Shown here: in pieces, positions 6,381-34,880 of the stretch | Numbering within the stretch: the first letter of the stretch is position 1 | How the letters are laid out: the number at the start of each line of letters is the position of its first letter | Source: Dendrobates tinctorius | Lineage: Eukaryota | Reading direction: 5' to 3' | DNA: 64,000 nt | Assembly (NCBI RefSeq): GCF_039654945.1 | Contig: NW_027361692.1 | Coordinates: forward strand, 24,490,001-24,554,000 | Translations under genes and position numbers: made by a program | The notes under the pieces: model-generated | The model's input: only the letters and a program-made list of their open reading frames with translations | Told to the model about the DNA's origin: nothing | Databases searched by the model: none

Positions 6381-6531
6381 GTTTAAGTCTCTCAATGGCG
6401 AAGGTCTCAAACTCTGTAAGAGAAATGTTTTCGGCTGGCGGAAGCTGATAGAACTGAAGACTGAACAGGTACTGATCCCCCTTCCTAGCGCCAGTTAATC
6501 TCTGGTGTCTCAGACTCCTGGTGAACTGCAT
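6381..6531 (-). CDS. PRIM2: DNA primase large subunit, first coding exon (exon 6381-6571 including 5'UTR); the gene continues left beyond the window
   Basis: MQFTRSLRHQRLTGARKGDQYLFSLQFYQLPPAENISLTEFETFAIERLK matches the PRIM2 N-terminus (LQFY..PP.ENISL.EFE..AI.R.K). Acceptor ttttcag precedes 6571 and a phase-1 donor gtgagt follows 6381. RAB23 is the expected neighbour. Confidence 0.93.
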
Positions 6532-13376: not shown

Positions 13377-14171
13377 TGTTATGATTGAGTCACCGTAGGA
13401 GGCAAAAACAGAAATGCTAAGTCCAGAAAACCAGAGAAGTTGGCAGCTATCGGATTGCAGACCCCTGAACCTAGCAACACAACTAGCAGTAGCCGTGGGG
13501 GGTTCCTACGATGCCCTAGACCCCTCTATCACAGCCGGAGAAATAGCTAGGCCTAAAGAAAGAAAGGGGAAAACTAAACTGCCCCAGAGCAGACCCCAAA
13601 GCAATAGGCAGCCCCCAACATATGACGGTGAAGCAAGATGAAAACACTAACACAGGCAGAAAGATAGATTGAGCAAAGACGGGGCCCAATCTAGCTAGAT
13701 AGAAAAGGACAGGAAGGCTGCTGTCTGCAATCCGTGAAAAACCCTATGAAAATAAGAGCCAACAGACTGATAGTGAAAAAGGCCCTGAAGACGCTAGGCT
13801 TCAAAAAAGCTATGTCAGTTCTCAGGAATATTCTGAAGACAGAGCTACAGGCAAAAGGAGATTCAGCTCACCCCAGCAGGGAATGGCAATATCCAGAAAA
13901 GCAAGGAAAACAAAAACAAAACACTAATGCAAACAGGCAAAGCAGAAAAACTTAGCTTAGAGGAGCAGGAATCAGACTGGTGTCCTAGAAGTCCACAGAG
14001 AAATCACCCGCAGGGCAGAAGGGCGTCGGCAGCCTTATATCCAGTCCGTGACTCCACTCAGCCAGTCATCCTCATCAGGTTCAGGTGCCTGATAATCAGG
14101 CTCATTACCTTCCTTCACCAGAATAGAGTTCACCAGACCTCAGTGACGAAGGGGAAAATGAACTCACAACA
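13377..14171. mobile_element. Solo LTR inserted in a MITE
   Basis: Ends TGTT...AACA with flanking direct repeat CTTTGG; removing it restores a sequence collinear with the MITE at ~2850-3210 (agacactytgga). Confidence 0.7.
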
Positions 14172-15930
14172 CTTTGGATTCCGTTTGGTGTCTGTTCTGG
14201 TGGTGTACCTCTTTATATGCGTGCACAGATCTGTGGTCCTCCACACATGTAAGCTATAAAGATGCCTAAAATGATGGGACGCTGCCGGAACAGAGGCCAG
14301 ATGAAGTCCAAGTGTCTCCATCTGGCTAATAAGTGGTTCCATTGGGGGTTTTGTTGGAATCGCGGTTTTGGAGAATTTACGTGGAAACCCCAACAGTAGC
14401 TGGACCTTAGACTCCTAGTCTAAAGTTAGCCACATGTCATGCCTGCACAGGGCCTCATGATTGGGCATAACATATGCTGAGCATGTTTATCCTCATTTTT
14501 AGATTGAATGACATGCTGATGTTTTCACTGTTATCCACCAGACCAGTATCAGTCTGCCTACTCCATCCATGGGCGGACACATGGTGTTGATACAGCACAT
14601 TATGTCTGGGAAGACTGCCCTCCAGCTACGCCTTGTTAATTGTTGGCGCCTTCGGGTCGGGCTAGTCTAGCAATTGAGATGTGCCACTCACAGTGAAGGT
14701 TTAAGCTGAATTCAGAAGGATTACTCTCTTAAATAAAAGTCTGACTTTGGAATATCATTCCAGTATATGGTTTAACTTGCAGTGCACTGGTCTATGTGCA
14801 GGGAGGAGAGGCTGACCTGGAAGAAGTGGGAATAGGGATCTTAATACTTCAACTCTCCATGTGGACTCACTGTGGTCTCAGACTGGCGCTTTTTTGTTTT
14901 TTTCATTCGTCTTACAATACGGCACCTGATTAGTATGTCCGGACCTGGTAGCAGCAGGCAGAAACGTGCGTTGGGGCCGTGTGTACAACACCACAGGACA
15001 GATATGGGTAATACAACTACCTGTTGTGATGCTCCTGCTGCTGTAGTCAATGCTTATCTGCTTTAATACTGTGATTTATGTATGATACATGTATTACTTA
15101 TTTACTTGCATTGATACATTTGCATGAGTCTTTCTGAGTTTGATTAATGGACTTGGTGAACTATCACTTTATATAACATACAGGTCCTCTTACTAGGCTC
15201 TCCCTACCTACACTGCATATATGGTGTTGCACTTGATTTTTCTTGTTGCACCCAGTCTTCTGCCTAAAATAGCTTTGTCATTGATACGTTTTTTTATTTT
15301 ATTTTGACGTGCTTTCTATGTATTGAGTTAAATAATCTTTTTGTACTCTATTGGTGGATTGTTTTACTCCAATGGAAAACAATATCGCTGTTAAAAACTC
15401 TAACCTCCTATATTCCAGTAGGCGCGTGGTCACAGATACACAGCTGTGTGTTGCAACGAAAGATCCGATCTGATTCCTCCAACCTAAAGCTCTTGGCAAT
15501 AAGGCAGTATATAAGAAAGCTCCTTTCACCTATACAAGGTCACCATGTAAGGGTCTTGTCATTCAGTAGGGTAGCTTACATAAACCATTAGAGGGGAACT
15601 CTGCTGAGATCTGTAATGACACTGAACAGATTTTTCAGCATTTTGGAGTCTCACATTTTATCTTTAACAGCGGCTCATATAAAGGAGGAAGAGAATTACA
15701 AGCAGACTGCTTGAGCCACATACCTCTAAAACAGGGTCAAATCTTAATTTAGCAGCATTGAATTTGAAAATGAGCTTTGGATCTAGTACATTTCCAATCC
15801 AAAGTTGGTACTCTGAGATCTGAATCCGGTGCTTACCGCTGTAACAAGTCTTCATTAGACCCCATATATTGGACGTCTTCACACTAAAGACTATGATCCT
15901 GGTGGCCCTGACTTGGGCATGGAGAGTTAA

Positions 15931-16572
15931 GGCCCCGTCTCACTAAGCGATCTCGGTAGTGAGATCGCTGCCGAGTCACAACTTTTGTGACGTAACAGCG
16001 ATCTCACCAGCGAGATCGCTGTGTGTGACAGCGATCAGCGAGCGGCCCCCCTGCCGGTATCGCTGGAAGAAACCTCTGGACATTTCTTTGGTCGCTGGTC
16101 TCCCGCTGGCCAGCACGCATCGCTGTGTGTGACAGCGGGAGACCAGCGATCAGGTGTAAAAAAATAATAAAAAAAAAGTTATTCTCACCTTCCGATGTCC
16201 CGTTCAGCCATCCTGCCTCTCTCCACTCTCCGGTCCCAGTGATCCTTTGCATGAATGACCGCGAGACTTTGTTATCCCGCGAGACCGTGACATCTCGCGG
16301 TCATTCGTGCAAAGGATCACTGGGACCGGAGCGTGGAGAGAGGCGGGATGGCTAAACGGGACGTCGGAAGGTGAGAATACTATATTTTTTATTTTGATAC
16401 TATTTTCTACAGTAATAGCCAGCGATGCCGGGCGCTCTGCATCGCTGTGCTGATCGCTGGTGAAGCTGTCTGTGTGACAGCTCACCAGCGATCACATAGC
16501 GACTTACCAGCGATCCTGACACCTTCATATCAGTGTCGGGATCGCTGGTGAGTCGCTTAGTGTGACGGGGAC
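15931..16572. mobile_element. MITE related to 5198-5560, with an internal ~200-bp palindrome
   Basis: TIR ggccccgtctcactaagcga / tcgcttagtgtgacgggg; internal inverted repeat 16180-16380. Confidence 0.75.
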
Positions 16573-16866
16573 TTTAGTTACATTCAAGCTTTGTTTGTGA
16601 TTCCTCTTTACACAGATCCTAGAAGATAGGGTGGTTCCAGAACCACCCTATCTTCCCAAGCTTGCTTCCAAGTTCCACAGTAGTTAGGCATTTGTGAACT
16701 AGGTTTATTAAGTCCTGTGATAGCCCTAGTCCAAAGATTCCTCCCTGGGATTTTAATTTAGCATGAGAAGCAGTGACCAAATGTCTTTTTGAGCCTTTGC
16801 AGGAGTTATCCATGAGAAATCTCACATTAAAAGCAGTGATCCTTGTGGCGTTAACAGCAGCTCTTA

Positions 16867-17720
16867 GGCTATGTGCACACATCCGGAATTCCCGTGGACT
16901 TTATGCGTTTGCTGCGTTTTTTTTCGCTGCAAAAACGCATAAAATAAGCAACCCAATTGAATTCAATGGCATTCCGCACATGCTATGATAATGCGTATTT
17001 TTCCGCTGCAAAATCGCATCTCGGAAAAATACGCAGCATGCTCATCGCGGGAATTCCGCACACATAGGAATGCATTGTTCCGCTTATTTTCCGCATGTGG
17101 CTATGCCCACCATGCACAAAGTAAGGGGAAAATGTGTGGATAGTACCCAGGGTCTGGAGGAGAGGAGAGTGTCCTCCAGGCCCTGGGTATCATATCCCTG
17201 TTAAATTTTTTTTTTTTTTAAATAAAAAATCATGATATTCTCACCTTCCGGCGTCCCACGCAGCGTTCCCAGGCCTCAGTGATGCTCCCGGCAACTCCCG
17301 TTCCCAGCGATGCCTTGCGACAATGACCTTTGACGTAGCGGTCTCGCGAAACCGCTACATCAAAGGTCATTGTCACAAGGCATCGCTGGGAACGGGACTT
17401 GCCGGGAGCATCGCGAGGATCGGGGATGCCAGAATGTGAGAAAAACACGAATAATTTTTTTAACTTTATATATTTTTACTATTGAGGCATAGGCAGCCTC
17501 AATAGTAAAAAGTTGGTCACACTTGTCAAACACTGTTTGACGAGTGTGACCAACCTGTCAATCAGTTTTCCAAGCAATGCTACAGATCGCTTGGAAAATG
17601 CTAGTATTCTGCAAGCTAATTACGCTTGCAAAACGCTAAGGCGGGAATTATGCATGCGGAATTCCCGCGGCAGGGAGTTGCGAAATTCCCGCAGGAATTC
17701 CAAACGCGTGCATTAGAGTC
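16867..17720. mobile_element. MITE (ggctatgtgcacac family)
   Basis: Starts tta-ggctatgtgcacac, degenerate right TIR, internal palindrome 17230-17445; splits the DIRS YR remnant. Confidence 0.6.
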
Positions 17721-18387
17721 AACAATATTTAGGCTTTATCATTTACTCAAATTTGATGACAATAGTTTGAACCCTGATCCTTCCTATCAACCAAAAGCAG
17801 CCAAGAGATTCCATTGGAGTCAAGAATTTGTACTTCCGAATAGTTCCTCAAGCTGGACGTTAGAAGGACCCTAATTAAATAAATGATAGCAATTGAAGAG
17901 TGGAGGAAGAGCCAGTCATAGTTTTTCTTTCCGGGGGGGCTAGGAAAGGTTTTAAACTTTCAAGGGGCACCCTAGCAAGGTGGATTAGGGTAGCCTGTTC
18001 TGCTAGCAACGTGTCAGTTCAAGAACGATAAGAGCTCATTCCACTCCAGAAGTGTGCATCAACCAAATATGTACAGTAAGGCAGCAGCTTGGTCCTCTAC
18101 ATCAACCTTGTACACTATAGGCTGGATTTATCCTCCACGGCTGATTTAACCTTTGGTAGAAGGGTTCTGCAATCGGTGGTCCCTCGCTAAGGTGGATTGT
18201 TTTTCTCTTTAAATCTCTCAAGTGGTGGTGTCATGGGTGTAGGGAAAAATCTAAGTTACTCACCAGTAATGGGATTGTCCAGAGCACATGACAACACCCC
18301 TATATATTCCCATCTGTCACCGGGTTTGGGTGCACTATTTAAGTTAAATGATTGGTTTTAAGAGTGTGGTGATAACTTGGTGAGTTA

Positions 18388-18751
18388 GGCTACTTTCACA
18401 TTAGCGTCGGGGCGACGTACCGTCGCATGCTGTGAAAGGCGTGCACAACGGGGGCATGCGGATTTTTCATCGCATCTGCTGCCCCATTGTAATGTCCGGG
18501 GAGGAGGGGGCGGAGTTTCGGCCGCCCCTGCGCGGTAGAAAATGGCGGAGACGCCCCCCAAAAAACGTTACATGTAACGTTTGTGTGCGTCGCGGCCGCC
18601 AAAACATGACGCATCCGTCACACGACGGATGCGACGCTAATGTAAGTCAATGGAGAAAAAACGCATCCTGCAGGCAACTTTGCAGGATGCGTTTTTTCCC
18701 CAAAACGACGCATTGCAACGTGCATCACACGACGCTAATGTGAAAGTAGCC
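18388..18751. mobile_element. PIF/Harbinger-type MITE
   Basis: Perfect TIR ggctactttcacattagcgtcg / cgacgctaatgtgaaagtagcc with TTA TSD. Confidence 0.85.
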
Positions 18752-20491
18752 TTATGTGCGTATGTGGGGGTCCGCTCATGCTCTGTACCCCCAACTGATG
18801 CAGGAGAGAGGTGCCGTCCTTTTATTTCAGTGGATTTCTTGTCCTAATTATGCAAATCCCCCCTCTCAGGTGCTGCCGTCATGGGCTCTAGAAAATCCCA
18901 TTATCAATGAGTAACTTAGATTTTTTTTTTTTTTTTACGACGTTTTGATTTTTTTCAGTTTTATGTGTCGATATGATGAAAAAGCAACATTACTTTTTTT
19001 AAAATAACCATATTCGATATACGGAATAAGTAACATGCCAGTTTGACAAATCAGGTCGTTCTGAATACGGCAATACCAAATGGTGTACTTTTTTTTGCTT
19101 AGTTTTGTTTTATCACAAACGTTGCGTTTTAAGTCGCAAAACCACTTTGTGATGTGTGTGAGCTTTTTGTTTGTGAAATAAAGTAGAAGAACAAAGTACC
19201 GTATATACTCGAGTATAAGCCGAGGCACCTAATTTTTCCACGGAAAACTGGGTATGCTTATTGACTCGAGTATAAGCCGGGTATGCATTGTCCCCTCAGG
19301 TCGGGCTTTCCTTCGTATTGCCCAGCTGCTAACTGCAGTACCTGCATCATCAGTGCAATACTAAGGAAATCCTAAAACCGTGGTGGCTGTTGGGACCTGG
19401 AGATTGGAGAATACTGCTCTAAGTTATCAAGCACAGGAGATTTTATTTTATATCGTGACCGACTTGGACAATAACACAATATCAAAATACCAGCAGCCGA
19501 CAGCACATCAGGAAAAATATAAGAATGCACGTTTAAAGTCCATAGACCCAACTGGACAAACGAAACAAAAAATAGAACAGCATCCAATCCAGGAGAAAAA
19601 ATAAAGAAAATGTCTTTATTCCGCCATCATACCACGTTTCGACCTGCTCGGTGTTTTTCAAGTACTTGATCAAGACGAAACATTGCATGATGGCGGAATA
19701 AAGACATTTTCTTTATTTTTTTTTCTCCTGGATTGGATGCTGTTCTATTTTTTCTTATTTGAGTAACACAATATCAGGCTGCGCTGCGGTAATGAAGAAT
19801 CCACATGGGATCTGGTGTCGTGTGATCATCCACATTGGTCACCTATCCTGGAGATCATCCCCAGCCATGAGGCAGCAGCTGGCATCTTCAGGTCTCATCG
19901 GGAGGGGGGTGCCGGTACACCACCCGCTCAGGTGAGCACCTTACTTTCACTTTCCTTTCCCCGATGGTCTTGTGCGCTTCTGGTTCCCATAGTTTTGGCT
20001 ACCTTTATATTGTTGTCTAGGTTACCAGCCACCTCTGCCAGCTCATAGTTCAGAGCAGCGGTGCGATCAATCCACTGATCTGAACTGTCAGCTTTCAGGA
20101 GGCGACAGGACGCATTGGATGCCTGAACATACAACTCGAGCAAGCTCCATGTCCTTTCCCGTGCCATGGAGACATAACCCTCATCATGGTACCAATGCTT
20201 TTATGCAACTGACAACTAAGCCAGTGTTGCCATAAACTTGTAAAATATTTTATTTTTACCCCAAAGTCTCTATAGCAAAAATAAGTTGTGCCACTCTGCT
20301 GCACCCAGATCACTAATATGGACGGGCAGACATGGAGCGGATCGGGCACAGTAATGCTGAACTAGAAGGCTAGTTCTGTAATATCTACTACTCCCACCAT
20401 CGAGCCGGGGGCTTCTTTCCTCCGCCCGTGACGCCCAGTGTGTGGTCCATCACAGACAACATGATGGATGGCATGCCTCCACAAGGCAGCA

Positions 20492-21532
20492 TCAAGAGAC
20501 GTCCTCCAGGTAGTCCGCCACATCGCTCAGGTGGGAGATGGAGTTGTCCAGGGTGAGCTCCTCCAGCTTGTGGTCACTGGCCGTCAGCTCGTCCACAGAC
20601 AGCTCGTCCTCCAGGTCCTCGCCAATGCTGGCCTCACTCCTCTGGCTGCTGCTGTGGAAGTCGTCCATGTAGTCCTCCTCCTGAGCAGCCCCGATCTCCA
20701 GAGAGGCCATCTTCTCGGAGGTGGATCTCAGCGAGCCTTCTCTGTCCGGGTCCTTGCCCGTAGGTGACCCCTGCGAGTGTGTGGGGACAGGGCGCACCTC
20801 CTCCTTCCAGCCATAGGTTCTCTCAGGCTTGGGGATGGGGTCATCGAAGAACGAGTCTCCTTCCTGGTCGTCCTCGTCGTCCGGCTGCGGGCTGCTGCTC
20901 TTGTAGTCGCCGACGACCACACTCCTGCAGTGGAGGAAGAGCCCCCGGTACACGGCCAGGAAGCGCTGCTCGTCTATGGCGCCGGGGAGCCCCGCCAGCT
21001 GCTCGGTGACGTACGTGTCCAGCATGCCCCGGTGGAAGCCAGGACACAGCTCCAGCAGCAGCGCCCGCAGCTCCGGCTCCCCAAGCTCCCCGGTGCCCGC
21101 CCGCTGCCGGTACTTGGCCCGGGCCTGCTCGGTGCGCCCCGGGGACAGCTCCTCTCTCTGCCGGTGCCGTCTCAGCAGCTCCAGCAGCAGAGGCGCCTCC
21201 GACACAGACAGCCCGAGCTCCCGGGCGGCGGCCGGGCGCTGGTCGGGGGCGCTGGGCAGGCAGGCCTCGGGCTGCAGCACGGCCAGGGTGAAGTCCAGGT
21301 GGAAGTGCTGCAGGAAGTCGGTGAGCAGGCTGGCGAGCAGGCGGCCATCGCTGGTGGCCAGGAACTGCCGCAGCCTCTCGTTGGTGAGCGCCGGCTTACT
21401 CTCCTCCTGCTCCTCCAGCGCCAGGAACACGGACGCCCGCAGCTCGGCCTTGATCTTGTTCAGGACGCCGTTATTCTCCAGCGTATGGATCAGCAGATCC
21501 CGGAGCTCCGTGTCCTCCTCCGCCGCAGACAT
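20492..21532 (-). CDS. CEP43: Centrosomal protein 43 (FGFR1 oncogene partner), intact single-exon ORF of 346 aa; probable retrogene
   Basis: N-terminus EEDTELRDLL..TLEN.GVLNKIKAELRA.VFLALEEQE and LisH-type LDFTLAV.QPE; internal GDSFFDDP.PKPE.TYGW; C-terminus LSDVADYLEDV. No introns or stops; AATAAA on the minus strand at 20249-20254. Confidence 0.93.
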   Translation of the reverse strand: MSAAEEDTELRDLLIHTLENNGVLNKIKAELRASVFLALEEQEESKPALTNERLRQFLATSDGRLLASLLTDFLQHFHLDFTLAVLQPEACLPSAPDQRPAAARELGLSVSEAPLLLELLRRHRQREELSPGRTEQARAKYRQRAGTGELGEPELRALLLELCPGFHRGMLDTYVTEQLAGLPGAIDEQRFLAVYRGLFLHCRSVVVGDYKSSSPQPDDEDDQEGDSFFDDPIPKPERTYGWKEEVRPVPTHSQGSPTGKDPDREGSLRSTSEKMASLEIGAAQEEDYMDDFHSSSQRSEASIGEDLEDELSVDELTASDHKLEELTLDNSISHLSDVADYLEDVS

Positions 21533-21870
21533 GTCGGAGCGGTGATGATTGCCGAGCTAATCGAGCGCAGTTGTGTCACTTACGTGCCGGCGAACAGCCA
21601 ATCACACAGCACGCCGCTTTTAGGGGGCGCTAGTGACGTCAGGGAAGCGCCAGGTTTGAGCGCCAAGTAATCCACGCCTTTGTTGGAACTGTTTCTGTCC
21701 ACTGGTAACTAAGCAACTTTAAGCTCCGCCCTTCCAGGCATTATGGGCAGATGTAAGATGCGGAGAAAAAAGTCGATCGGCTCGTCAGCTCAGCTACTCT
21801 GGCCTTATGGTCTGTGTCTCCCAGCTCAGCCCTCCCCGCGTTCCCCGGGCGCTTGGCAACCGAGCGGCGC
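21533..21870. promoter_or_regulatory. Putative bidirectional CpG-island promoter (CEP43 leftward, RAB23 rightward)
   Basis: CCAAT 21598-21602, perfect CRE TGACGTCA 21634-21641, X-box-like GTAACTAAGCAAC 21705-21717, GC box ctccgccc 21724-21731, half X-box TTGGCAAC 21853-21860; inside a CpG-rich region ~20500-22060. Confidence 0.65.
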
Positions 21871-21912
21871 AGAGCGTGGCAGGAAGACTGGGACTGCGCT
21901 GCCAGGAGCTGG
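21780..21912 (+). other. RAB23: Candidate non-coding exon 1 of RAB23 (start approximate)
   Basis: GC-rich segment after the promoter motifs ending in a possible donor gg|gtagga. The first coding exon has an upstream acceptor, so a 5' exon must exist; this is the most promoter-like CpG island upstream. Confidence 0.4.
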
Positions 21913-22059
21913 GTAGGAGCCGGGCATCGGCGGGATGGGTGCGGTTCTTTGTACCGATGTGGTGTCCGGTTATGTTGGCGTGGCCGCATAACTTAGTGTC
22001 CTAACCCAGTGTGATGGCAGGAGCTGTCTGCGCCGCCGGCCTGTGCTCTGCGGGGGTCC

Positions 22060-23752
22060 GTGCCCTGCCGGATAGGGTTACACGCGGCACAGTGCAGCAT
22101 CGGGGGCAGATCAGCTACATGGCTGATCCATCACTGCTGCCGGAGACCACTGGTCATAGGGTCTGTCGTATCTCGGAGGTCCCTGCCCTGGATGCTGCCG
22201 GATAGGGTTACACTGGGCACAGTGCAGCATCGGGGGCAGATCAGCTACATGGCTGATCCATCACTGCTGCCGGAGACCACTGGTCATAGGGTCTGTCGTA
22301 TCTCGGAGGTCCCTGCCCTGGATGCTGCCGGATAGGGTTACACTGGGCACAGTGCAGCATCGGGGGCAGACCAGCTACATGGCTGATCCATCACTGCTGC
22401 CGGAGACCGCTGATCATAGGGTCTGTCCTATCTCAGGGGTCCCTGCCCTGGATGCTGCTGGATAGTGCTGCTGCCCAGTGCAGCATCAGGGGCAGACCAG
22501 CTACATGGCTGATCCATCTCTGCTGCTGGAGACCGCTGATCATAGGGTCTGTCATATCTCGGAGGTCCCTGCCCACATGGCTGATCCATCACTGCTGCCA
22601 AAGACTGCTGATCATAGGGTCTGTCCTATCTCAGGGGTCCCTGCCCTGGATGCTACCGGATAGGGTTACACGGGGCACAGTGCAGCATCAGGGGCAGACC
22701 AGCTACATGGCTGATCCATCACTGCTGCCGGAGACCACTGATCATAGGGTCTGTCATATCTCGGAGGTCCCTGCCCACATGGCTGAGCCATCACTGCTGC
22801 CGAAGACCATTGATCATAGGGTCTGTCCTATCTCAGGGGTCCCTGCCCTGGATGCTGCCAGATAGGGTTACACTGGGCACAGTGCAGCATCGGGGGCAGA
22901 CCAGCTACATGGCTGATCCATCACTGCTGCCGGAGACCGCTGATCATAGGGTCTGTCCTATCTCAGGAGTCCCTGCCCTGGATGCTGCCGGATAGGGTTA
23001 CACGGGGCACAGTGCAGCATCGGGGGCAAACCAGCTACATGGCTGATCCATCACTGCTGCCGGAGACCACTGATCATAGGGTCTGTCCTATCTCAGGAGT
23101 CCCTGCCCTGGATGCTGCCGGATAGGGTTACACGGGGCACAGTGCAGCATCGGGGGCAAACCAGCTACATGGCTGATCCATCACTGCTGCCGGAGACCAC
23201 TGATCATAGGGTCTGTCCTATCTCAGGAGTCCCTGCCCTGGATGCTGCCGGATTGGGTTACACGGGGCACAGTGCAGCATCGGTGGCAGACCAGCTACAT
23301 TGTCTGATCCATCACTGCTGCCGGAGACCACTGATCATAGGGTCTGTCCTATCTCAGGAGTCCCTGCCCTGGATGCTGCCGGATAGGGTTACACGGGGCA
23401 CAGTGCAGCATCGGTGGCAGACCAGCTACATTGTCTGATCCATCACTGCTGCCGGAGACCACTGATCATAGGGTCTGTCCTATCTCAGGGGTCCCTGCCC
23501 TGGATGCTGCCGGATTGGGTTACACGGGGCACAGTGCAGCATCGGGTGGCAGACCAGCTACATTGTCTGATCCATCACTGCTGCCGGAGACCACTGATCA
23601 TAGGGTCTGTCATATCTCAGGGGTCCCTGCCCTGGATGCTGCCGGATAGGGTTACACGGGGCACAGTGCAGCATCGGGGGCAGACCAGCTACATGGCTGA
23701 TCCATCACTGCTGCTGGAGACCACTGTTCATAGGGTCTGTCATATCTCGGGG
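22060..23752. repeat. Tandem array, ~130-bp unit, about 12-13 copies with variants
   Basis: gatagggtta recurs at 22071, 22201, 22331 and again at 22861, 22991, 23121. Confidence 0.95.
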
Positions 23753-24792
23753 GTACTAAGCACAGATATCAGCCCCCTGTGCCTGCGGTAGGGATCTGGT
23801 ACCTTATATATGTGTGGGGTGATCGGGGGCATAAATGGGGAAACATGGGGCCCCCAGATCAAAAGCCCTGATTTCCCCCTCCCCCTCTATTTGGTGGGGT
23901 CAGCAAATAAACAGTCACACAAGCACATACATCCCAGTATTTACAGATATGGAGGGGCAAATGTGCACAGTAATTGTGCCTCTATTGTAGCCCCTTATTA
24001 TTCTCACCCACTGCAGTGCCCCTTTCATGACCCCCCCCCCCAATGAGTACTGTATATTACCCTATAAATGACACACACACTGTCCCCACACAGTATGACC
24101 CCTCCACAGGGAACCCACCACATATACCTTATTGTGTCAACCAACCCAATATGATGTTCCCACAGTATGAGGCCACACATTATATTGCCACTAGTTACCT
24201 CTCCCCCCACAGTATGCTGCCTTCCTCCACAGTGCAGTGCGCATGGTACAGTGGCCTCATTGCACACCGTATAATGGCAAAATGAAAGGTAACCCCCAGC
24301 CCCATTTCCCAATGTCCTGCTTCGGTTTGTGTTTTGCGTACCAAGACTCCATGCACTGAGCTCCATTTAGTGATGTCCTCTTGCCTGCTGTGCTGAGACT
24401 TGGACACACATGCTGAATAGTGGAAGGTGAAGCTGATGGCTACACTATTATATTCAACTAGGGAAGCAGCTACCATTGAAATCCAGGCACCGTTCATCTC
24501 CAGCGCTCCACAACTGAGAGGCCACGCGGTCTGCCGCTATTTATCTTTTGGCCTTTGATGTTGAGGGGCCCGGGTCCTGTAAACGTTTTAGAGCCCATCC
24601 TGAGGCCGGTTTAGATTCACTTAAGTATTTATACAGCTTTTGAGGCTGTTGAGTTCATGAGAGGAGACACGCGACCACTCTACATGGACCATGAATCTCT
24701 GACATGGGAAACCAGGCTTACTTTACATAGTGTACTAAGGCAACAAAACATAAATCCTGCAGCAGAAAAAGGGAGAAAACCCAAATATATAT

Positions 24793-24824
<32 letters not shown>

Positions 24825-25519
24825 CATTCCTTATAAAAGACCGAAATCCCAGAAACCCACAATGCCAGTGTGAAAGTGTCACTTATTTCCTGCCGACCTC
24901 ACACCTCGGACAAGAGGGCTATGAAGCAAAGAGCTGTGGGCAAATGTCTATGTTCCTTTAGCTTCTGTGTCACCTCTGACCTGACCATGGCCGCTGTTGT
25001 CGCCCTTTCCTCCAGCTGAGACGTAGAATTCTGCCCCCTAGAGAGCATTGATCTGCCCGAGTGCCTGTCTTATCTGTAGACACATAACTATGGCAGCAGA
25101 TTCATGTTTTGCAGAATTCTGTATTTCCTCCCAGGCACTGCTTCAGATTCCTGTTATTCAGAGCAGATTGGAAATACTGAATTCTTATGTGTTAACGCCC
25201 TGAACATATGTTTCCAACCAAAATATTTTGCTCCTGAATGTGAAACATCCCAAGAGTCATCCAGGACTGAGCCGTCCAGAAACGTCGCTGATTGCTGTGT
25301 ACATGGAGGCAGCGCTTGAAATCCGGAGTCTATGGCACCGGAAAGACAACCTAAAATAATAGCCACAGCGCTGAAACTCAGGCTTAGCTTAGTAGTCAGA
25401 GGTCTTGCTGTTCAGTCTTTCACTCACTATCATCCTTTTTTTTGTGCTAGAAAGAAGTGTCAGACTTTTTTGATTGCACGCTGGAGAATATATACAGTGT
25501 GTATATATATAATATAATA

Positions 25520-26236
25520 ATTAGTAAATCAACCCCCCTTTATCACCCCCTTAGTTAGGTAAAAATAATAAAATAAAAAATGTATATATTTCCATTTTTC
25601 CGTTAGGGGTTAGGGTTATGGTCGGGGTTAGAGCTAGGGTTGGGGTTAGAATTGGGGGAGTTTCCACTGTTTAGGCACATCAGGGGGTCTCCAAACGCGA
25701 CATGGCGCCACCATTGATTCCAGCCAGTTTTGCATTCAAAACATCAAACTGTGCTCTTTCCCTTCTGAGCCCCGACGTGTGCCCAAACAGTGGCTTTCCG
25801 CCACTTATGGGGTATCGGCGTACTCAGGAGAAAGTGCACAACAAATTTTGTGGTCCATTTTCTCCTGATACCCTTGTGAAAATAAAAAAAATTGATTCCA
25901 AAGTAAATTTTTTGCGAAAAAAGTAAAATGTTCATTTTTTTCCTTCCTCATTGCTTTATTTCTCGTGAAGCACCTGAAGGGTTAATAAACTTCTTGAATT
26001 TGGCTTTGAGCACCTTGAGGGGTGCAGTTTTTAGAATGGTGTCACTTTTGTGTATTTTCTGTCATATAGACCCCTCAAACTCACTTCAAACAATATGTCA
26101 TGAAAAAACATTATCAGAATCAGCGGGATCCATTAAAGCGTTCCGGAGTTATAACCTCATAAAGTGACAGTGGTCAGAATTGTAAAAATTGGCCTGGTCA
26201 TTAAGTACTAAATTGGCTCTGTCACTAAGGTGTTAA
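25520..26236. mobile_element. Fragment of an abundant TTAA-ended non-autonomous DNA element (related fragments ~195-1230, 10210-10760, 12900-13230)
   Basis: Shared motifs (ccccattttggaa, gtcactttt, gggttaata), degenerate ttaggg run, and an end resembling aaggggttaa. Confidence 0.45.
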
Positions 26237-26239
26237 GGT

Positions 26240-27200
26240 AATCTCGGAAAGATGCAGTGATGTTGATATCAGGGCTGTGGGGGCCATATCATCACTTCTA
26301 GGAATAGTTTTAAGATAGTTCCTTAGAGACACATCTGCATGTTTTGGGCCATTTTCCTGCTGCAGAATAAATTTGGAGCCAATCGGATGCCTCCCTGAAG
26401 GTATTGCATAGTGGATAAGAATGTGCCTGTATTTCTCCGCATTGATAACACCATTAATCCTACCCAATTCCATGTGCTGAAATGCAGCCCCAATCTTGCA
26501 AGAAACCTCCACCATGCTTTACTGTACACTGCATGCTGTTACAGCCCAAGGCAAATTTTGATTCATCAGTTCACACATTTGCTGCCATTTTTCTGCTCTC
26601 CTGGTCCCATGATTTTGTGCATAGCTGAGTCTCTGACAGGTTTCCATGCTGAAGGTATGACTTTTGATCACAATTCTTCTATAAACACCACTTCTGTCCA
26701 GAACAGTAGAATGCTGTACCTGGGTCCTACTGGCTACTGGAACTTCTGAGCTGATAGCACTTCTGGACATATTTCGAAGGGAAGTAAGCATGGTGTGTCT
26801 TCCATCCGATGCACAAGTTTCCTCCTGTTACCATGAAGTCTGCGTTCCTCCACGTTGACCATTTCTTGATGCCTCTTCAAAGGGGATTTAACAGCAGGTC
26901 TTGAAAACTCCAGTCTGTTTTGAAATCTGTGCCTCGCAGAGACCCTCTAAATGCAGTTCTTCTACTTCAGGGTTTCCCAACTCCAGTCCTCAAGGCACAC
27001 CAACAAATCATGTTTTCAGGATTTCCTTAGTATTGCTCAGGTGATAATTGCTTCACCTGTGCAATACAAAGGAAATCCTGAAAACATGACCTGTTGGTGT
27101 GCCTTGAGGACTGGAGTTGGGAAACCCTGTTCTACCTTGTGTCTTTTTGCTGTGATCAGTCTTGCCATGGTGTTTGACCTGTGACCTGAAACTGTCTTGG
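26240..27200 (-). mobile_element. Decayed Tc1 transposase fragment
   Basis: Minus-strand remnants such as KYRHILIHYAIPSG..LQQENGPKH (QDNDPKH-like) with frameshifts. Confidence 0.7.
26968..27129. mobile_element. hAT-type MITE, 162 bp
   Basis: Long TIR cagggtttcccaactccagtcctcaaggcacaccaaca; 8-bp TSD TTCTACTT/TTCTACCT. Confidence 0.88.
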
Positions 27201-27369
27201 GCCTCATTCAGATGTCTGGGTGGCACATACATGTGCTGTCTGCTTTGACTTATTTATTTTTTCCACGGCTACCACACATTCTAATCTATGCAGTCCTGCG
27301 AGCCTGGAATAAGGTTATTCTGAAGCTGCAATTTATTTATTTTTAAAATATATTACTGTGGGAGTGCCA

Positions 27370-28460
27370 TGAATGTGCCGCATTGTGCTGAGCCCAGGTC
27401 CTCTTTAAATCCACACAGCCATTCGTGAGTTTACAGGTTTCTTGTGGTATGGAAATGGTTTAGAGTTCCTCGTGGTCTATTGGCTGTGCTGCTTATTGGA
27501 ACCACACCCTTCCATTTTATAAACCCGTGTCTGGCTTCCCTCCATGTCGTCATGGATTTGGACAATTTTATGTGGCCTCCTTTTGGCTCTGGGAGGGGTA
27601 TGTACTGTATACCCATGCTGGACTAGGATTCTCTGTCAGTTATACTTTCGTTCTGTCTGGGTCTGACCCCTGGTGTGCATACTGCATTGTTTGATTGTTT
27701 TCTGGTTTTGACCCTCCGGCCCGTCTGTCTTGACTCTGCTACTTCTCGTCCCTTTTGTACCTCACCGCTACGTTTGGCTTTCTGACCTCTTGCTTCTACC
27801 TGACTACTCTTTTGTCTCATTCCCCGGTACCTCGTTTGACCCCCCGGTTTAGACTTGGTAACGTTTAGTCTTCCCTCCGGCGCCTCACGCCGCCCTCGGC
27901 CACTCCCCCTGGGTCACGTGGGTTAGGTCCTGCTCGCAGCCTAGTGAGTTCTCCACCGCTCTGCGTTCACCTCCCTCACAGCTGTGTGCAGCCTTCCCTG
28001 AAGCGGTCAGCACAGAGGACCGTGACACTTGAGAGCAATAGAATCTTCATTCTGTTCCTGGCTGCATTGGAGAAGGTGTTCTGGAGAGCTGCTCTTGTCG
28101 TTTTGAGATTGTTGTATGCGGTTTGTTTTGAATACCTCTATCTTTGCCTTTTTGGCATTTTTTTGCGTTGCTTTTCTGCCTCCTTACTGTGCACCCATTT
28201 TTCCGTTGTATTTTATCCTGTGTGCCTTTTGTTTGATGGTGCATTGGTTCTGCCTGTCTGTCTAGTCGGTGTTAACCTTTTACTCCCTGGGGGGTAGGGT
28301 GGGAGCTGCTAGGATTTCATAGGCGCACAGGGAGGTACTTGACACAGGCCTCCCCACCTTCAGGGGTAACTCTGGGGTTAGAGATAGACTAGGTTTTCCC
28401 TAGATTAATGGACAGTATAGAGTCCCTCCTCCCCAACTTTCCTATGGTCACAGCGTTACA
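27370..28460 (+). mobile_element. LTR-like remnant(s)
   Basis: Two LTR-like ends (cgtgaca at 28027, cgttaca at 28460), TATA-like motifs and pyrimidine-rich ctgac repeats; no TSD confirmed. Confidence 0.35.
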
Positions 28461-31017
28461 AGGAATTTATCGGTTACTTTTTGTTTCTGTTTTACTTCAC
28501 GATTCAACATCAAATTTTTTGTTTTTACGTGTTTTTTTTCTCCTCCTCTTCTTCCAAGAGCCATCTTTTTTTTTATTTTTCTCTCAACGTAGCTATTGTT
28601 TTATGGTTTTTGTTCTTACTGCGGTCATTAGTTCAGTGCAAAATGACCCAGAAATATTTTTGTCCAGTCCAATGACGGCGATGTCAGGCTTGCATCGAAT
28701 CCCATCACCTATTTAAGTGATTTTGCAAAAATTTTGTCACCATGTTTTCGTTTTTCTGACACATAACAACATTACAGCTGAGTGATAGCTTGGTGTTCTA
28801 CACGGTGGGCTAACAGTTTTACTGATACCAATCCGGAGCACAGAGGACATGTATGATCCTCTTCCCCCCTCCCCCCTTTTTTTTTTTTCTCTTCCTTTGG
28901 CATTCTAGTTGACCAAGGGAAAAAAACATAATTAATCTTTATTTTTATAATAATCTTTGTTTATATAGCGCTAACATATTCCGCAGCGCTTTACAGTTTG
29001 CACACATTATCATCACTGTCCCCGATGGGGCTCACAATCTAAATTCTGGCGTTTTGATGTCTTTTCTCCTTACGTTTTTTTTTTTTTTTACCATAGAGTT
29101 GATTCTTTCTATATTTTGATAAATCAGACTATTACATACTCGGTGATTTTTCTTCCCTCTTTCTTTTTAACAAGGATTGTGTAGTCTTGAGACCTGTAAC
29201 TTAGTTTTGCCACCTATAGAGCTGTATGAGGACTTTGAGGTTCATACAATGTTTTGATCAGTTTTTATTGCATTTTTTGTGGGAAGTGCAGAGACCCAAA
29301 AATTGGTTGTTAGTAATTAAAAAGATAGAAACACCAATGCATACAGTATGGGTTTCACTTTTTTCTTTCTTTTTTTTGTCATCTTCATAGGGTACTTGAA
29401 CCTGTAATAGTTTTTTCTGTTCTTTATGCCAAAGAATCTAACCCTAATAATGATCGTGACCTGACAGAGCTACCGCCATGGCAGCGATAGGCGCAGGCCC
29501 CTGGCTGATATGGCCCCCGTACAGGGTTTTGTGAATTTAGTTATCGATAGAGAAAATATCTGATTTCTTGGGACATAGATTCCCTTTAAAAATCTTGTGT
29601 ATCACCAGGTTTTTGCTATGTTACCTGAGAGGGGCAGAGACTCTGATTCCAGCAATGTGTCATTTACTAGTCTGTATCCGTTCATTTTGATATAGTGTGT
29701 TCTCTGACTGGTGATTTCTATATAACTCTGCCCACATCACTGACTGACTTGCGCTCTGTATACGCTGTGCATAGGCAGCAAGCTACTAATCAGTGGTAGT
29801 GGCAAAGTTACATGGAGTAAGGGGACCTCATGGTGCAAGACAACTAGTCCCACTAGTTATAACCTAATGATAATGCATTGATATGTATCAAGGTCTCTGT
29901 CATTCTGCTTTCAGATTACAAAGAAAACTGGTCACAGATTCCCTTTTAATTGTATAATCAAGTGGATAGAAGGGACCAAAAGGGGAGAACCACTTGTATG
30001 TTATTTGGGTATTTCATAGATCTGGTGCTCTCTATCCGAATTACAGCATGGGAATACAAGTCCTACAAAGCCATATTTCAGTGGCAGGAACCTTGTTACA
30101 TCCGGACATCTGATCTCAGAAACTGAGACGTCCAGAGCGTAATTCCTGCATTCACGTTCAAAGTCAGAGGAGACGTGGTGACAGGTCACTTTTCTGCTCC
30201 TCTCTGGCTCTTGGCAGATGTTTACCTGGACAGAGTATGATGGGTCAGGGCCATAGCCCCTGATTCCCTCCACTTACATCTTGTAGCTCGTGCTCATTGC
30301 ATGTGAAGAATGAATAACTAATGCTTTTTAGATTATTGGTTCAGTAAGAGAAAATGTATTATTAGAGAATTCCCTCTATACTTATTCAACTTTCCAAAAA
30401 TAAAAAAACGTCGCAGGCAAGTATGAACCATCCTGCAGCCGGTGTAACCAGTAAAAGTGTCCTTTTATTCAGGAAAATGAGAATACGATGTAGATCAGCG
30501 ATGGTTAAGAACATTTCAGAGTCGCTGCACGTATGAGGACTTTGAAAATACAAATTATTGCTTTATAGAGCATCATTGATTTCAGGGTGCTGGACATGTA
30601 AAATGGGGTCACATGCAAAATATAGATGGCAACGATGCTTATCTAAAAATGCATGCAGGTCACATGCACACATATGGTTCGAATAGTAAAAACTACAAAG
30701 CCACAATAACGGTATAGCGTAGTGGTATTACTAGCAGAGCAATAAAGGTAATACATATAATCCCATATAAAGACATATAGGCCAAATGACAAAGAATGGA
30801 AAGTGGCATGCAGAAAAGATTAGGTCCCGAAAGAATAAATGGAATATGAATTGTACAGGGAAATGGCAAACAATGCAAGGCTATTGTGTAGGAAATGTAT
30901 TGAAATAGGCATCAGACAACAGCAGTGCATGGGTCCTCGCCATAATGGTTATATACAAGGCACATAATGTATCATAGATTAGGAATACATGTGTGTCCAC
31001 CTGATGATGTACAGGAG

Positions 31018-31052
31018 CCCCGACGCTCGTTTCACCCTGCTTCCTCAGGGGG
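31018..31052 (-). ncRNA. Minimal type-I hammerhead ribozyme-like motif in a probable Penelope remnant (~30630-31260)
   Basis: Minus strand cccc-CTGAGGA-agcagggt-GAAA-cgagc-GTC-gggg: intact core, GUC triplet, stem I cccc/gggg. Confidence 0.65.
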
Positions 31053-32398
31053 CGTATGTAGAGTCGGCAGAGAGACTGGGGGTTTAAATATAGCCAGGGG
31101 TCCAATTGTAGAAGAGAGATCAGCATCCATTATTGTTATGGTCAGGTGTGCAGCGCATGACATGCTCACTCCTCAATGGAGAAAATGACTTCATCATGTT
31201 TCCGGGCCGCGAGACACAAGGTGTTAAAATGTCACCCAAAGGTCTTTTAAACATATTGATACATTCTTTTCATTGCTGATTTTTCGGGCTGGGTCCAGAG
31301 GAGGATGCTCTTGTTCAGTGTTCTATATGCAGAGATTGTGAAGGCAGACATGCTAATAAACCCTCACTGCCTTCTCCTTGAGGAGTCTTTCTGCATCTGA
31401 CTGCCCTCCCCACTGCATGATTTTGTGCAAGCACCTATTGACATTTTAGAATGTCAGCGCAGGGTAAAGTGCGGAGGGCCCCAGACCTTTAAAGTCTATG
31501 GATGGTCAAGAAGTAGTGAAGTCCTGTTCCAGATTAATCACACCTTCCCACCTGCTTGTTTTCGGTCTTTCCACCCCCTGCCTTTTCTTGGATTAACAGT
31601 TCTGGCTTTAGTTGGAGAAGGGCAGAGATAGATGGAAGGTGGGAAGGTGTATATAAATGACTGGCCCCGCCGTGATGCACTGAGCGCCTGAACTTGGTTT
31701 GAACAGTCATTCAGTGCTGACAGTCCCGTTAATAATATATATATATATGAGTGCCAGTGACTTTCGTCAGAGAAGGCTCTCGGATGGTTTTGTGTCGTCT
31801 CAGGAGGTTGCTTGGGTTCCAGACTCCTAAATGGTCAGTTTGTGTCTAACTGATAAAAACACTGTAGCATTGTATCAGTAGATTCTGCTCTTATTAGAAA
31901 GTTCAGCTGTGGTTTCTATGAAATCTTTTGCTTTTAGTATTCTGATTTTTTTTTCTCCATTCCTCACAGTACCTTTGTTAACAGAACAGGAATGTATTGG
32001 GCAGGAGCCAGACTTTTTTCCATTGCTATGTTTAGTCTAAGCTGTGTGATGCTTGTGCTCCATTAAGATGACAGCCCAATAATACATGGGCCAGATACTT
32101 CTTTCTGCAGAACAGTATTGTCTATAGCAGGGGGAGGGAACCTTCTGTGGCCCCGGGCAGATTCCTGGGCCGGCAGCTGTGTTTTGACGGCCCCTGGCCT
32201 TTGAATTTCTTCTTGCTCTGTGAGCACACACACGGTGTTCACTGCTGAATGCTGAAACGTGTGCAATGAAGGGTTACATCCAGCGTCAGGACGTACTTTG
32301 TGGGCAGAGTTAGCATGCAATTTCTACAGCCCCCCAAAGGATCCTATAAATATCCATATGGCCTTTGGAAGAAAAACGTTCCCCACCTCTGACCTTAA

Positions 32399-32847
32399 AG
32401 GGAATCTGTCACCCCTTTTTTGAGATATCATATAATGATATCATTCAATTGTGTGTCACATAAGGATTCTCTTAGTACTTTTGCTTCCCCCTGACCCCGC
32501 ACCTTTCATGCATAAATACCTTTTTTATATATCGGTTCAAATGTATGTAAACTGCTGCTGTCTGGTCTGCTGGGCGGGGCTTATTCACTTGCTCCCCCCT
32601 CCCTGTCTTGCTCTATACATTTCTTCTTGCATAGAGCAAGACAGGGAGGAGGGAGCAGGTGAATAAGCCCCGCCCATCGGACAGGACTGCGGCAGTTTAC
32701 ATACATCTGAACCGATATAAAAAAGGTATTTATGCATGAAAGGTGTGGGGTCAGGGGGAAGCAAAAGTACTAAGAGAATCCTCATGTGACACACAATTGA
32801 ATTATATCATTACATGATATCTCAAAAAAAGGGGTGACAGATTCCCT
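32399..32847. mobile_element. TTAA-target palindromic MITE (T2/Kolobok-like)
   Basis: agggaatctgtcacccctttttt / aaaaaaggggtgacagattccct with arms complementary over ~190 bp; TTAA on both sides. Confidence 0.88.
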
Positions 32848-33143
32848 TTAAGTAATAAAGCTCATTTTCTTCGAGTTCTTTTATTTACTCCCCTATGCAC
32901 ATATAACTCAAGGTCTATTATGACGTCTTGTATTATATACTAGTTTTAGATTGTATTTTAAAGTTCTTTATCACGAAACTTATCTCCAAACTATAGGGCA
33001 AAGTAACAGTGGAGTAATTGTCTATAGCAGCTGATCATGTTCGAAGCCCTCATTTTTCCAAGGTCCTGTAATTATTATTATTATTCAAAATGAAAGCATC
33101 ATCTGACTAATTGTGCTGGACAACTTTTACATAGGGCCTTATA

Positions 33144-33667
33144 CAGTGGCATGTCAAAATTTGGGCACACCTGGTCAAAATTACTGTTATTGTGAACAGT
33201 TAAGCAAGTTGAATATTTTCATCTTTTACATGTTAAAAATTACAAAAAGGAAAATGGGCTGATGCAAAAGAGTTGGGCACCCTTGGGGATTTGTGTGCTC
33301 AGATAACTTTCAAACCTTAATTAGCCTGTTAGGGTTATGGATTGTTCACTATCATTGTTAGACAAGGCCAGGTGATGCAAATTTCTCAGCTTTAGAAAAT
33401 CCCAGCCTCCGCTAACCTTGTGCCAAAAAACAGCAGCCATGGGTTCTTCTAAGCAGCTGCCTAGCCCTCTGAAAATGAAAGTGAAGGAGGCCCACAAAGC
33501 AGAAGAAAGTTATAAGAAGATAGCAAAGCATTTTCAAGTTGCCCTTTCCTTAGTTCGAAATGTAATTAAGAAATGGCAGTTAACAGTGGAGGTCAAGATA
33601 AGGTCTGGAAGACCAAACAAAATTACAGTGAGGGCTGCTCTTAACATCGCTAGAAAGGCAAATCCAA

Positions 33668-33726
<59 letters not shown>

Positions 33727-34714
33727 GCATGACTGCAACAGACCTTCAGAAAGATTTAGCAGACTCTGGAGTTGTGGTAAAATGTTCTACTGTTCAGAGA
33801 CCCCTGCACAAATATATGGCCTTCATGAATGGGTCATCAAAAAACCTCTCCTATGTCTTTACCATATAATTCAGAGTTAAAGGTATTCAAAAGAACATCT
33901 AAACAAGCCTGATACATTTTGGAAGCAAGTCTTGTGGACTAATTGAGGTTAAAATAGAACTCTCTGGCCACAATGATCAGAGGTATGTGTGGAAAACAAA
34001 AAAGGGCACAGAAATTCAGGAAAAAATATCTTGATGACCATGAACCATGGAGGTGGATCCATCATGCTTTGGGGTTGTGTTGCATGTGCAGTCAAATCCA
34101 TGGGGAACATTTCATAGGTAGGAGAAGAAATGGATTGCTGTAAATGAAATTTCAACAAATTCTTGATGCAAACATATGACCATCTGTCAAAAAAAGCTGA
34201 AATTGAAAAGAAGATGGCTTCTACCAATGGATAGTGATCTTAAACACACATCAAAATCCACAATAGACTACCTCAAAAGGCGCAAGCTGAAGGTTTTACA
34301 ATGCCCCTCACAGTCTGTGATCTGAACGTCATTAAAAATGTGTGGCTAGAACTGAAAATAGCAGTGTTTGCAAGACAACCCAGGAATCTCAAACCTGGAA
34401 AAATTTTCCAAGGAAGAATGGATGAAAATTCCTCAAACAAGAATTAAAAGATTCTTAGGTGGCTACAAAAAGCTGTGATACTTTCAAACGAGGGTGCTAC
34501 TAGGTACTAGCCATGCACGGTGGCCAAACTTTTGCATCGGTCCATTTTCCTTTTTGTAATTCGCAAATGTAAAAGACTTTGCCTGAAATAGAAATGTGTC
34601 ATATTTAACTTTAGCCCTTTTTAGAGATCTTTATTTTTATTTTTTCAACTTGCTTAACTGTTAACAATAACAGTAATTTTAACCAAGGGTGTCCAAACTT
34701 TCACATTGCCACTG
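33144..34714 (+). mobile_element. Full-length but decayed Tc1 transposon with an inserted (CA)n tract (33671-33725)
   Basis: TA-cagtggc...gccactg ends, long TIRs, transposase remnants (MGSSKQL..., RSGRP, HGGGSIMLWGC) with many stops and frameshifts. Confidence 0.85.
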
Positions 34715-34880
34715 TGTCTGTGGGGTTCCAACACTGTGTTTTGTAGTTTTATTAGTTTACTTTTACAATCTCTGCAGTTTGTCTTTTGTGATGCGATTGT
34801 GTAAACTTGACTCTTCTCGATCTTCCTTATATGCCTCCAGGCTAAAGTCATTCAAAAGTGGTGAAGGTCGAACAATCAAG

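Follow-up and report, generated by a model that had tools for sequence, protein, structure and literature searches.

A single-exon CEP43 gene between PRIM2 and RAB23

We analyzed a 64,000-nucleotide stretch of the genome of the dendrobatid frog Dendrobates tinctorius (contig NW_027361692.1, positions 24,490,001 to 24,554,000), hereafter called the window, in which a gene for the centrosomal protein CEP43 (also named FOP or FGFR1OP) lies as a single exon between PRIM2 and RAB23. Its open reading frame (ORF) is uninterrupted from ATG to TGA and encodes 346 amino acids (aa). The Pfam FOP_dimer family (PF09398) matches it with an E value of 1.9e-18 (66.9 bits, cutoff 29.4), and the sole PDB sequence match of the protein is 2d68, the N-terminal domain of human FOP (E=4e-16). 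The coding sequence (CDS) is rich in guanine plus cytosine (GC fraction 0.67, and 0.89 at third codon positions, GC3), carries 81 CpGs at an observed/expected ratio of 0.70, and is overlapped by an antisense ORF of 297 aa. Since long ORFs arise readily in GC-rich DNA, the reality of CEP43 rests on homology and not on ORF length, and it is this homology that rules out a chance ORF. An earlier note, made from the letters of the window, had read an intact intronless CEP43/FGFR1OP ORF of 346 aa with GC-biased third positions, retained CpGs, and a poly(A) signal about 240 nucleotides (nt) past the stop, and all of this is borne out by the ORF scan, the Pfam and PDB matches, the composition, and the transcripts described below.

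20492..21532, reverse strand: CDS of the putative CEP43 (FOP/FGFR1OP) retrogene, single exon, 346 codons plus stop (ORF, Pfam FOP_dimer, PDB 2d68, RNA contigs)

Transcription and the region shared with RAB23

Contigs of four public sequencing runs (X1, X2, X17, and X18) were placed on positions 19500-23500. They match the window at at least 99% identity and cover the whole ORF without a joint, the X17 contig spanning 20288-21546 and the X18 contig 19724-21581. Three of them end in 3' at the proximal poly(A) signal, an AATAAA at +237 from the stop (20249 in X1, 20288 in X17, and 20306 in X2), and the 5' ends fall at 21554 (X1), 21581 (X2 and X18), and 21546 (X17), with an additional low-depth X17 contig at 21518-21697. 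Sequencing depth is zero over 22046-23500, a silent stretch of 1.45 kb that serves as a control against DNA contamination. Contigs of X2 and X18 over 21854-21912 continue into letters matching 34842 onward, which defines the GT-AG intron 21913-34840 of RAB23 and identifies the X2 and X18 libraries as RNA. These data show that the CEP43 copy is transcribed as an unspliced mRNA, and the candidate functional gene proposed in the earlier note is thus expressed. The transcript of X18 runs ∼525 nt past the proximal poly(A) signal, as far as a second AATAAA and an A-run, which looks like alternative polyadenylation. The features of the transcription unit, including its untranslated regions (UTRs) and a motif resembling a cAMP response element (CRE), are as follows.

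20249..20491, reverse strand: 3' UTR to the proximal poly(A) signal, AATAAA at 20249-20254 (signal and RNA contig ends)
19724..20248, reverse strand: extended 3' UTR, in X18 only, with the second AATAAA at +774 and an A9 run at +767
21533..21581, reverse strand: 5' UTR supported by RNA (contig ends); a weak contig may extend it to 21697
21582..21853, no strand: candidate shared bidirectional CpG-island promoter of CEP43 (reverse) and RAB23 (forward) (composition, conservation, transcript ends)
21598-21602: CCAAT motif in the shared promoter
21634-21641: CRE-like motif TGACGTCA in the shared promoter
21821..21885, no strand: near-invariant block of ∼60 bp in hyloid, ranoid, and myobatrachid frogs, overlapping the start of RAB23 exon 1 (upstream alignment)
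21854..21912, forward strand: noncoding exon 1 of RAB23, RNA-supported part, with its GT donor at 21913-21914 (contig ends in X2 and X18)

The interval 21533-21913 has a GC fraction of 0.59 and a CpG observed/expected ratio of 0.88, and the region from -100 to -360 upstream of the ATG, which includes the ∼60-bp block and TGACGTCA, is strongly conserved in five neobatrachian loci. The gap between the 5' end of CEP43 (RNA to 21581, weakly to 21697) and exon 1 of RAB23 (from 21854 or before) is at most 273 bp. From this head-to-head arrangement, we infer that one promoter, that of RAB23, drives both genes.

Single-exon CEP43 genes across neobatrachian frogs

In a protein database search with the window protein, the closest matches were proteins named centrosomal protein 43 in the dendrobatids Phyllobates and Ranitomeya (85-86% identity), followed, among the matches listed, by ∼20 other neobatrachian frogs, each covering 100% of the query. 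In neobatrachians, the gene already carries the NCBI/RefSeq name centrosomal protein 43 (CEP43). The gene range equals the coding length, i.e., the CDS is a single exon, in all eight neobatrachian genomes examined, which cover Hyloidea, Ranoidea, and Myobatrachoidea:

Dendrobates tinctorius (window genome): 1041 nt, 346 aa, single exon
Phyllobates: 1083 nt, 360 aa, single exon
Bufo: 1092 nt, 363 aa, single exon
Dendropsophus: 1146 nt, 381 aa, single exon
Rana: 1209 nt, 402 aa, single exon
Pyxicephalus: 1293 nt, 430 aa, single exon
Nanorana: 1305 nt, 434 aa, single exon
Mixophyes: 1338 nt, 445 aa, single exon

RAB23 lies head-to-head upstream of CEP43 in five of the eight, with all three groups represented. 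The canonical start exon of RAB23 stands head-to-head with CEP43, 8-9.5 kb upstream of it, in Nanorana, Mixophyes, and Pyxicephalus; in the window genome and Phyllobates, the end of a Ras-family gene model lies 211-263 bp upstream of CEP43. The arrangement is therefore not private to the window's lineage or recent, being common to Hyloidea, Ranoidea, and Myobatrachoidea with RAB23 upstream in members of each; the part of the earlier note that held the copy to be old stands.

A multi-exon parent gene in other vertebrates

The CEP43 gene of Pelodytes ibericus (Pelobatoidea) covers 53,353 bp and encodes 488 aa in 18 coding exons, all of which we mapped, most of them in clear GT/AG splice-site contexts. 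Other non-neobatrachian frogs, salamanders, a caecilian, and fishes have parent-type CEP43 proteins with many splice isoforms. Of the 17 intron positions in Pelodytes, 13 correspond to residues within the continuous ORF of the window, which runs straight through them as expected for the intronless retrogene that the earlier note had proposed, and the other four fall in gaps of the window sequence. Furthermore, Pelodytes exon 13 (aa 333-355) is missing, cut at its boundaries, in every neobatrachian protein aligned, and the equivalent segment is present in Spea and Xenopus. The missing exon 13 is as expected if the neobatrachian copy derives from an exon-skipped CEP43 mRNA, a scenario that we favor from the alignments. 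A single retroposition would account in one step for the absence of every intron, for the precise removal of one exon, and for the changed neighborhood. No RAB23 or PRIM2 exon was found in the 73-kb Pelodytes CEP43 locus, and a search of the CEP43 flanks by long ORFs and motifs did not find CCR6 or RNASET2 either.

The Pelodytes intron between coding exons 2 and 3 (13626-26128 of the locus) contains an 845-aa ORF in three copies, each flanked by the same ORFs; two of the copies lie in tandem ∼4.5 kb apart, and the third is inverted. This points to a recently amplified element.

Phylogeny of CEP43

We analyzed 41 CEP43 proteins with IQ-TREE. Neobatrachian CEP43 forms one clade (100/100 support) nested within anuran CEP43, and the well-supported groups inside it match frog relationships (Ranoidea, 100/99; Myobatrachoidea plus Hyloidea, 97/86). 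The stem of this clade (0.39) is the longest inner branch of the tree. In the free tree the clade is not adjacent to Pelobatoidea; an approximately unbiased (AU) test did not reject the placement of Neobatrachia with Pelobatoidea (difference in log likelihood, 1.66; p=0.30), so that an origin on the neobatrachian stem is compatible with the data. Neobatrachia comprises the large majority of living frog species, and published frog timetrees would place the event roughly 150-200 million years ago.

A database of 5.8 billion proteins was searched twice, with the window protein and with the Pelodytes protein as queries; the following holds among the matches listed. With the Pelodytes query, all matches at 59-74% identity are non-neobatrachian frogs, salamanders stand at 54-56%, a caecilian at 53%, and fishes at ∼50%, and the neobatrachian matches, at 50-52% and level with sharks, are only the intronless genes. 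Neither search returned a parent-type CEP43 protein from any neobatrachian, and no neobatrachian species is present twice in either. Two unnamed Logan matches cluster in the tree with a megophryid frog and with salamanders, respectively.

Selection, evolutionary rate, and base composition

The ratio of nonsynonymous to synonymous substitution rates (dN/dS) was computed with the Nei-Gojobori method (NG86) on five codon-aligned retrogenes (window, Dendropsophus, Nanorana, Pyxicephalus, and Mixophyes); the Yang-Nielsen method (YN00) was unstable on these saturated, GC-skewed pairs, and the NG86 values are used. Pairwise dN/dS is 0.17-0.30 in 10 of 10 pairs, with the lowest values in the two terminal blocks and higher ones in the middle region. 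The bootstrap 95% interval is 0.21-0.41 for the window against Dendropsophus (dS, 0.49) and 0.15-0.28 for Nanorana against Pyxicephalus (dS, 0.56), and none of 300 replicates per pair, for three pairs, exceeds 0.46. The neobatrachian CEP43 retrogene is under purifying selection, as the earlier note had supposed for an old retrocopy.

The mean number of substitutions per site from the anuran ancestor to the tips is 0.96 for neobatrachians (1.14 for the window protein) versus 0.30 for other frogs, showing that neobatrachian CEP43 evolved about three times faster than the parent-type CEP43 of frogs. In addition, GC3 reaches 0.83-0.89 in the two hyloid genes versus 0.58-0.60 in the ranoid and myobatrachid genes, the fraction of glycine, alanine, arginine, and proline residues is 0.26 in the hyloid products versus 0.19-0.22 in the other three, and the hyloid products are shorter than the ranoid and myobatrachid ones. 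This pattern suggests that GC-biased gene conversion, or absorption of the gene into the promoter CpG island, drove the divergence and shortening of the hyloid protein.

Protein anatomy

The window protein retains all 53 columns that are invariant in 45 vertebrate CEP43 sequences; these map to residues 3-114, to a DSFxD motif at 226-230, and to a block of the form Y-x-DDF...S...GE at 288-305. At 346 aa, the protein is shorter than its counterparts in ranoid and myobatrachid frogs (430-445 aa) and in non-neobatrachian frogs (447-488 aa), and its deletions map to Pelodytes exons 5-6 and 11-14. The conserved N- and C-terminal blocks and the shortened, diverged middle that the earlier note had described are thus both confirmed.

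Pfam EF-hands are found in CEP43 proteins of non-neobatrachian frogs, of fishes, and of several ranoids; the window protein has no Pfam EF-hand even at an E value of up to 0.1, and none was found in other hyloids. Its first EF-hand loop has lost the D-x-D-x-N positions and carries a two-residue deletion. AlphaFold2, run on a 45-sequence alignment, predicts a domain of two helix-loop-helix units at residues 130-206, with a predicted local distance difference test score (pLDDT) of ∼90, and a disordered tail from residue 207. The top Foldseek match of the predicted fold is 2d68 (template modeling score [TM-score] by target, 0.73), and the remaining matches, with weak E values, are almost all EF-hand proteins. 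The model thus suggests that the EF-hand-pair fold is kept, and the altered loop suggests that calcium binding is probably lost in the window protein.

Deletion of FOP is lethal in chicken DT40 cells, and residues 1-173 of human FOP suffice for targeting to the centrosome and to satellites (PMC3595297). FOP acts with CEP350 and CEP19 in early ciliogenesis (PMC5493781). Human FOP is known to reside at centrioles and satellites and to bind CEP350, CEP19, and EB1 (PMC3595297, PMC5493781). Given the conservation reported here, the frog protein very probably fulfills the usual centriolar role of CEP43.

Neighboring genes and further ORFs

The flanking genes named in the earlier note were recognized on both sides of the CEP43 ORF, PRIM2 by its first coding exon, which matches DNA primase large subunit residues 7-53 in PDB (E=2e-15), and RAB23 by its first coding exon, whose best PDB match is Rab-23 (E=3.7e-28) and for which the next Rab family reaches only 3e-10.

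∼6379-6531, reverse strand: first coding exon of PRIM2 (DNA primase large subunit), ∼14 kb downstream of the CEP43 stop (motif scan, PDB)
34841..∼35036, forward strand: RAB23 exon 2, with the canonical start codon at 34881, a Ras P-loop motif, and the AG acceptor at 34839-34840
62558..62695, forward strand: open reading piece with the next RAB23 coding exon (WDTAGQEE switch II motif; motif scan)

The annotated RAB23 model has 307 aa in the window genome and 286 aa in Phyllobates, versus 237 aa in Nanorana, Mixophyes, and Pyxicephalus. The 70 extra codons of the window model fit an in-frame ATG at 21743 read via exon 1 (to 21912) into exon 2 (34841-34880). Because RNA contigs back exon 1 only from ∼21854, this N-terminal extension is probably an annotation artifact reaching into the shared promoter.

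Three further ORFs with Pfam matches were also observed. In RAB23 intron 2, a 340-aa ORF at 41471-42490 (reverse strand) has Sleeping Beauty/Tc3-type helix-turn-helix and DDE_3 domains (E values from 1e-23 to 7e-16) and, by its sequence, is a putative Tc1/mariner transposase, largely intact. A 355-aa ORF with a reverse transcriptase domain (RVT_1, E=3.9e-17) at 56424-57488 (reverse strand) is a retroelement fragment in the same intron. At 44308-45771 (forward strand), a 488-aa ORF matches Pfam LAP2alpha (E=1.6e-13) and adjoins a 658-aa ORF without a Pfam match; in mammals, the domain specific to LAP2alpha probably descends from a DIRS-like element.

Discussion

Based on these results, we propose that the gene in the window is quite likely the working CEP43 (FOP) of this frog, an "orphan" retrogene that replaced its parent. 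On the neobatrachian stem, a spliced CEP43 mRNA lacking one alternative exon would have been reverse-transcribed, and the cDNA would have inserted head-to-head by the CpG-island promoter of RAB23, between RAB23 and PRIM2, so that the RAB23 promoter would drive both genes. The 18-exon parent would then have been lost, leaving the copy as the only CEP43. The protein, which retains the FOP dimerization domain and the C-terminal acidic motifs, would act in microtubule anchoring linked to CEP350, CEP19, and EB1 and in ciliogenesis. After relocation, the protein evolved faster, and in hyloids, among them this species, the gene became short and very GC-rich, with loss of the matches to EF-hand sequence models.

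Several points weigh against this proposal. The parent appears to have been lost in neobatrachians as judged from protein databases and annotations only; accordingly, of the replacement that the earlier note had envisaged, the part that stands is that no neobatrachian parent-type protein occurs among the matches listed, and the absence of the parent from this genome is extrapolated from protein databases. Retroposition of CEP43 is deduced from structure alone: no poly(A) tract lies directly past the proximal poly(A) signal of the window or at a shared position in five species (the only long A run among them is an A29 in Pyxicephalus, ∼470 nt beyond the nearest upstream AATAAA/ATTAAA), no target-site duplications are detectable at the retrogene, and a comparison of the UTRs and flanks of the Pelodytes parent with the retrogene flanks gave scores not above shuffled controls, the Pelodytes ATG exon being preceded by a splice acceptor, so that its upstream genomic sequence is not the 5' UTR. 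The decay of poly(A) and duplication hallmarks is expected for an event that predates the split of the three neobatrachian groups, and it makes the evidence less direct but no less plausible. Insertion at a new locus is likewise a deduction. The 10 kb around CEP43 showed no RAB23 gene or exon in the genomes of Bufo, Rana, and Dendropsophus, leaving synteny unverified there. Finally, the type labels of the sequencing runs are guesses ("RNA?" or "?"), and the function of the frog protein is deduced from conservation only.

The main competing explanation, which we regard as unlikely, is that the window gene is a functional retrogene coexisting with a surviving multi-exon parent that is unannotated or was missed, in other words an ordinary duplicate. 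The absence of the parent is indeed judged from proteins and not from a scan of the window's genome, the protein evidence consists of the best 120 of 8000 scored candidates, and a Lithobates pipiens protein is named "centrosomal protein 43-like", a name that NCBI sometimes gives to second copies. However, that protein falls inside the retrogene clade, beside Rana, and NCBI gives the plain CEP43 name to the intronless gene in most species. Moreover, ∼20 annotated neobatrachian genomes and Logan gave, among the matches listed, no parent-type protein at the expected 59-74% identity and no species twice. A DNA-level rearrangement that moved the gene, with introns lost later and without retroposition, would fit the lack of a remaining poly(A) tail or target-site duplications, which leaves an RNA intermediate not directly visible. 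We consider it very improbable, since it would have to explain why each of the neobatrachian lineages sampled lacks 17 of 17 introns, why an entire exon has been removed exactly from boundary to boundary, and why no parental flanking sequence was carried along, three observations that a single cDNA insertion accounts for in one step.

Two further readings deserve hardly any credence. That the gene is a nonfunctional processed pseudogene, its frame open by chance, could be argued from the paucity of stops in GC-rich DNA, since the antisense strand holds the 297-aa ORF and the other two sense frames of the window gene hold just 6-7 stops. Yet more than 20 species of three neobatrachian groups have an intact frame, ranoid orthologs keep it at a GC3 of 0.58-0.60 while their other frames hold 15-45 stops, and a pseudogene is refuted by these intact frames together with the dN/dS of 0.17-0.30 and the transcription of the copy. 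For the converse idea, that an intronless CEP43 beside RAB23 is ancestral in amphibians and the multi-exon form derived, we found no supporting point; it is refuted by the 18 exons of Pelodytes, by the many-isoform parent-type proteins of non-neobatrachian frogs, salamanders, a caecilian, lungfish, coelacanth, and ray-finned and cartilaginous fishes, and by the tree, in which the intronless genes form a single nested clade. The earlier note had named an ancestral and already documented single-exon CEP43 as one case against its proposal: the gene is not ancestral, and it is annotated, with no retrogene description found. Searches of the full-text literature yielded no report of a CEP43/FGFR1OP or neobatrachian retrogene, nor one that treats the gene as a neobatrachian character. 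These single-exon genes are already annotated as CEP43, and their retrogene nature, ordinary in mechanism, is apparently undescribed.

If the replacement proposed here is true, modern frogs have as their sole CEP43 a cDNA that moved to a new place, took over a neighbor's promoter, evolves faster, and has decayed calcium-binding loops, and it offers a clean, datable nonmammalian case of an essential gene replaced by a retrogene. Findings on Xenopus cep43, a multi-exon gene with many isoforms, may then not transfer to most other frogs, in which alternative splicing of CEP43 would no longer be possible. The single insertion with its exact missing exon would be a rare genomic change that marks the group of Hyloidea, Ranoidea, and Myobatrachoidea, and frog CEP43 would also offer a natural experiment on the dispensable portion of the protein. 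More tentatively, and with less confidence than in the replacement itself, we speculate that an essential centriole gene gave way, in the common ancestor of Neobatrachia, to its own cDNA on the promoter of the cilia-trafficking gene RAB23, and that a threefold rise in the rate of protein evolution and repeated decay of the EF-hand calcium sites followed. The way in which CEP43 regulates centrioles and cilia would then differ systematically between modern frogs and Xenopus, the usual amphibian model for cilia.

Like vertebrate CEP43/FOP, to which it is orthologous by the tree, the window protein has a LisH-containing FOP_dimer N terminus and the invariant C-terminal motifs; unlike the multi-exon vertebrate gene, it is encoded by a single exon in a probably new neighborhood and has 346 aa versus 447-488 aa in non-neobatrachian frogs and no Pfam EF-hand. 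Retrocopies can use a neighbor's bidirectional promoter via head-to-head integration within 2 kb (Carelli et al. 2016, PMC4772013), and the 5' ends of CEP43 and RAB23, at most 273 bp apart in one CpG island, resemble such cases. As in orphan retrogenes (Ciomborowska et al. 2013, PMC3548309; Carelli et al. 2016, PMC4772013), an intronless copy stands at a probably new locus, its parent is undetected among the protein matches listed, and it is under purifying selection with a CpG-island promoter, a promoter type found in 9 of 10 mammalian orphan retrogenes (Carelli et al. 2016, PMC4772013). Human orphan retrogenes are described as being under very strong constraint (Ciomborowska et al. 2013, PMC3548309); in contrast to them, the CEP43 of the window evolved about three times faster than parent-type frog orthologs and lost its EF-hand sequence match, and the lineage concerned is Neobatrachia and not mammals.

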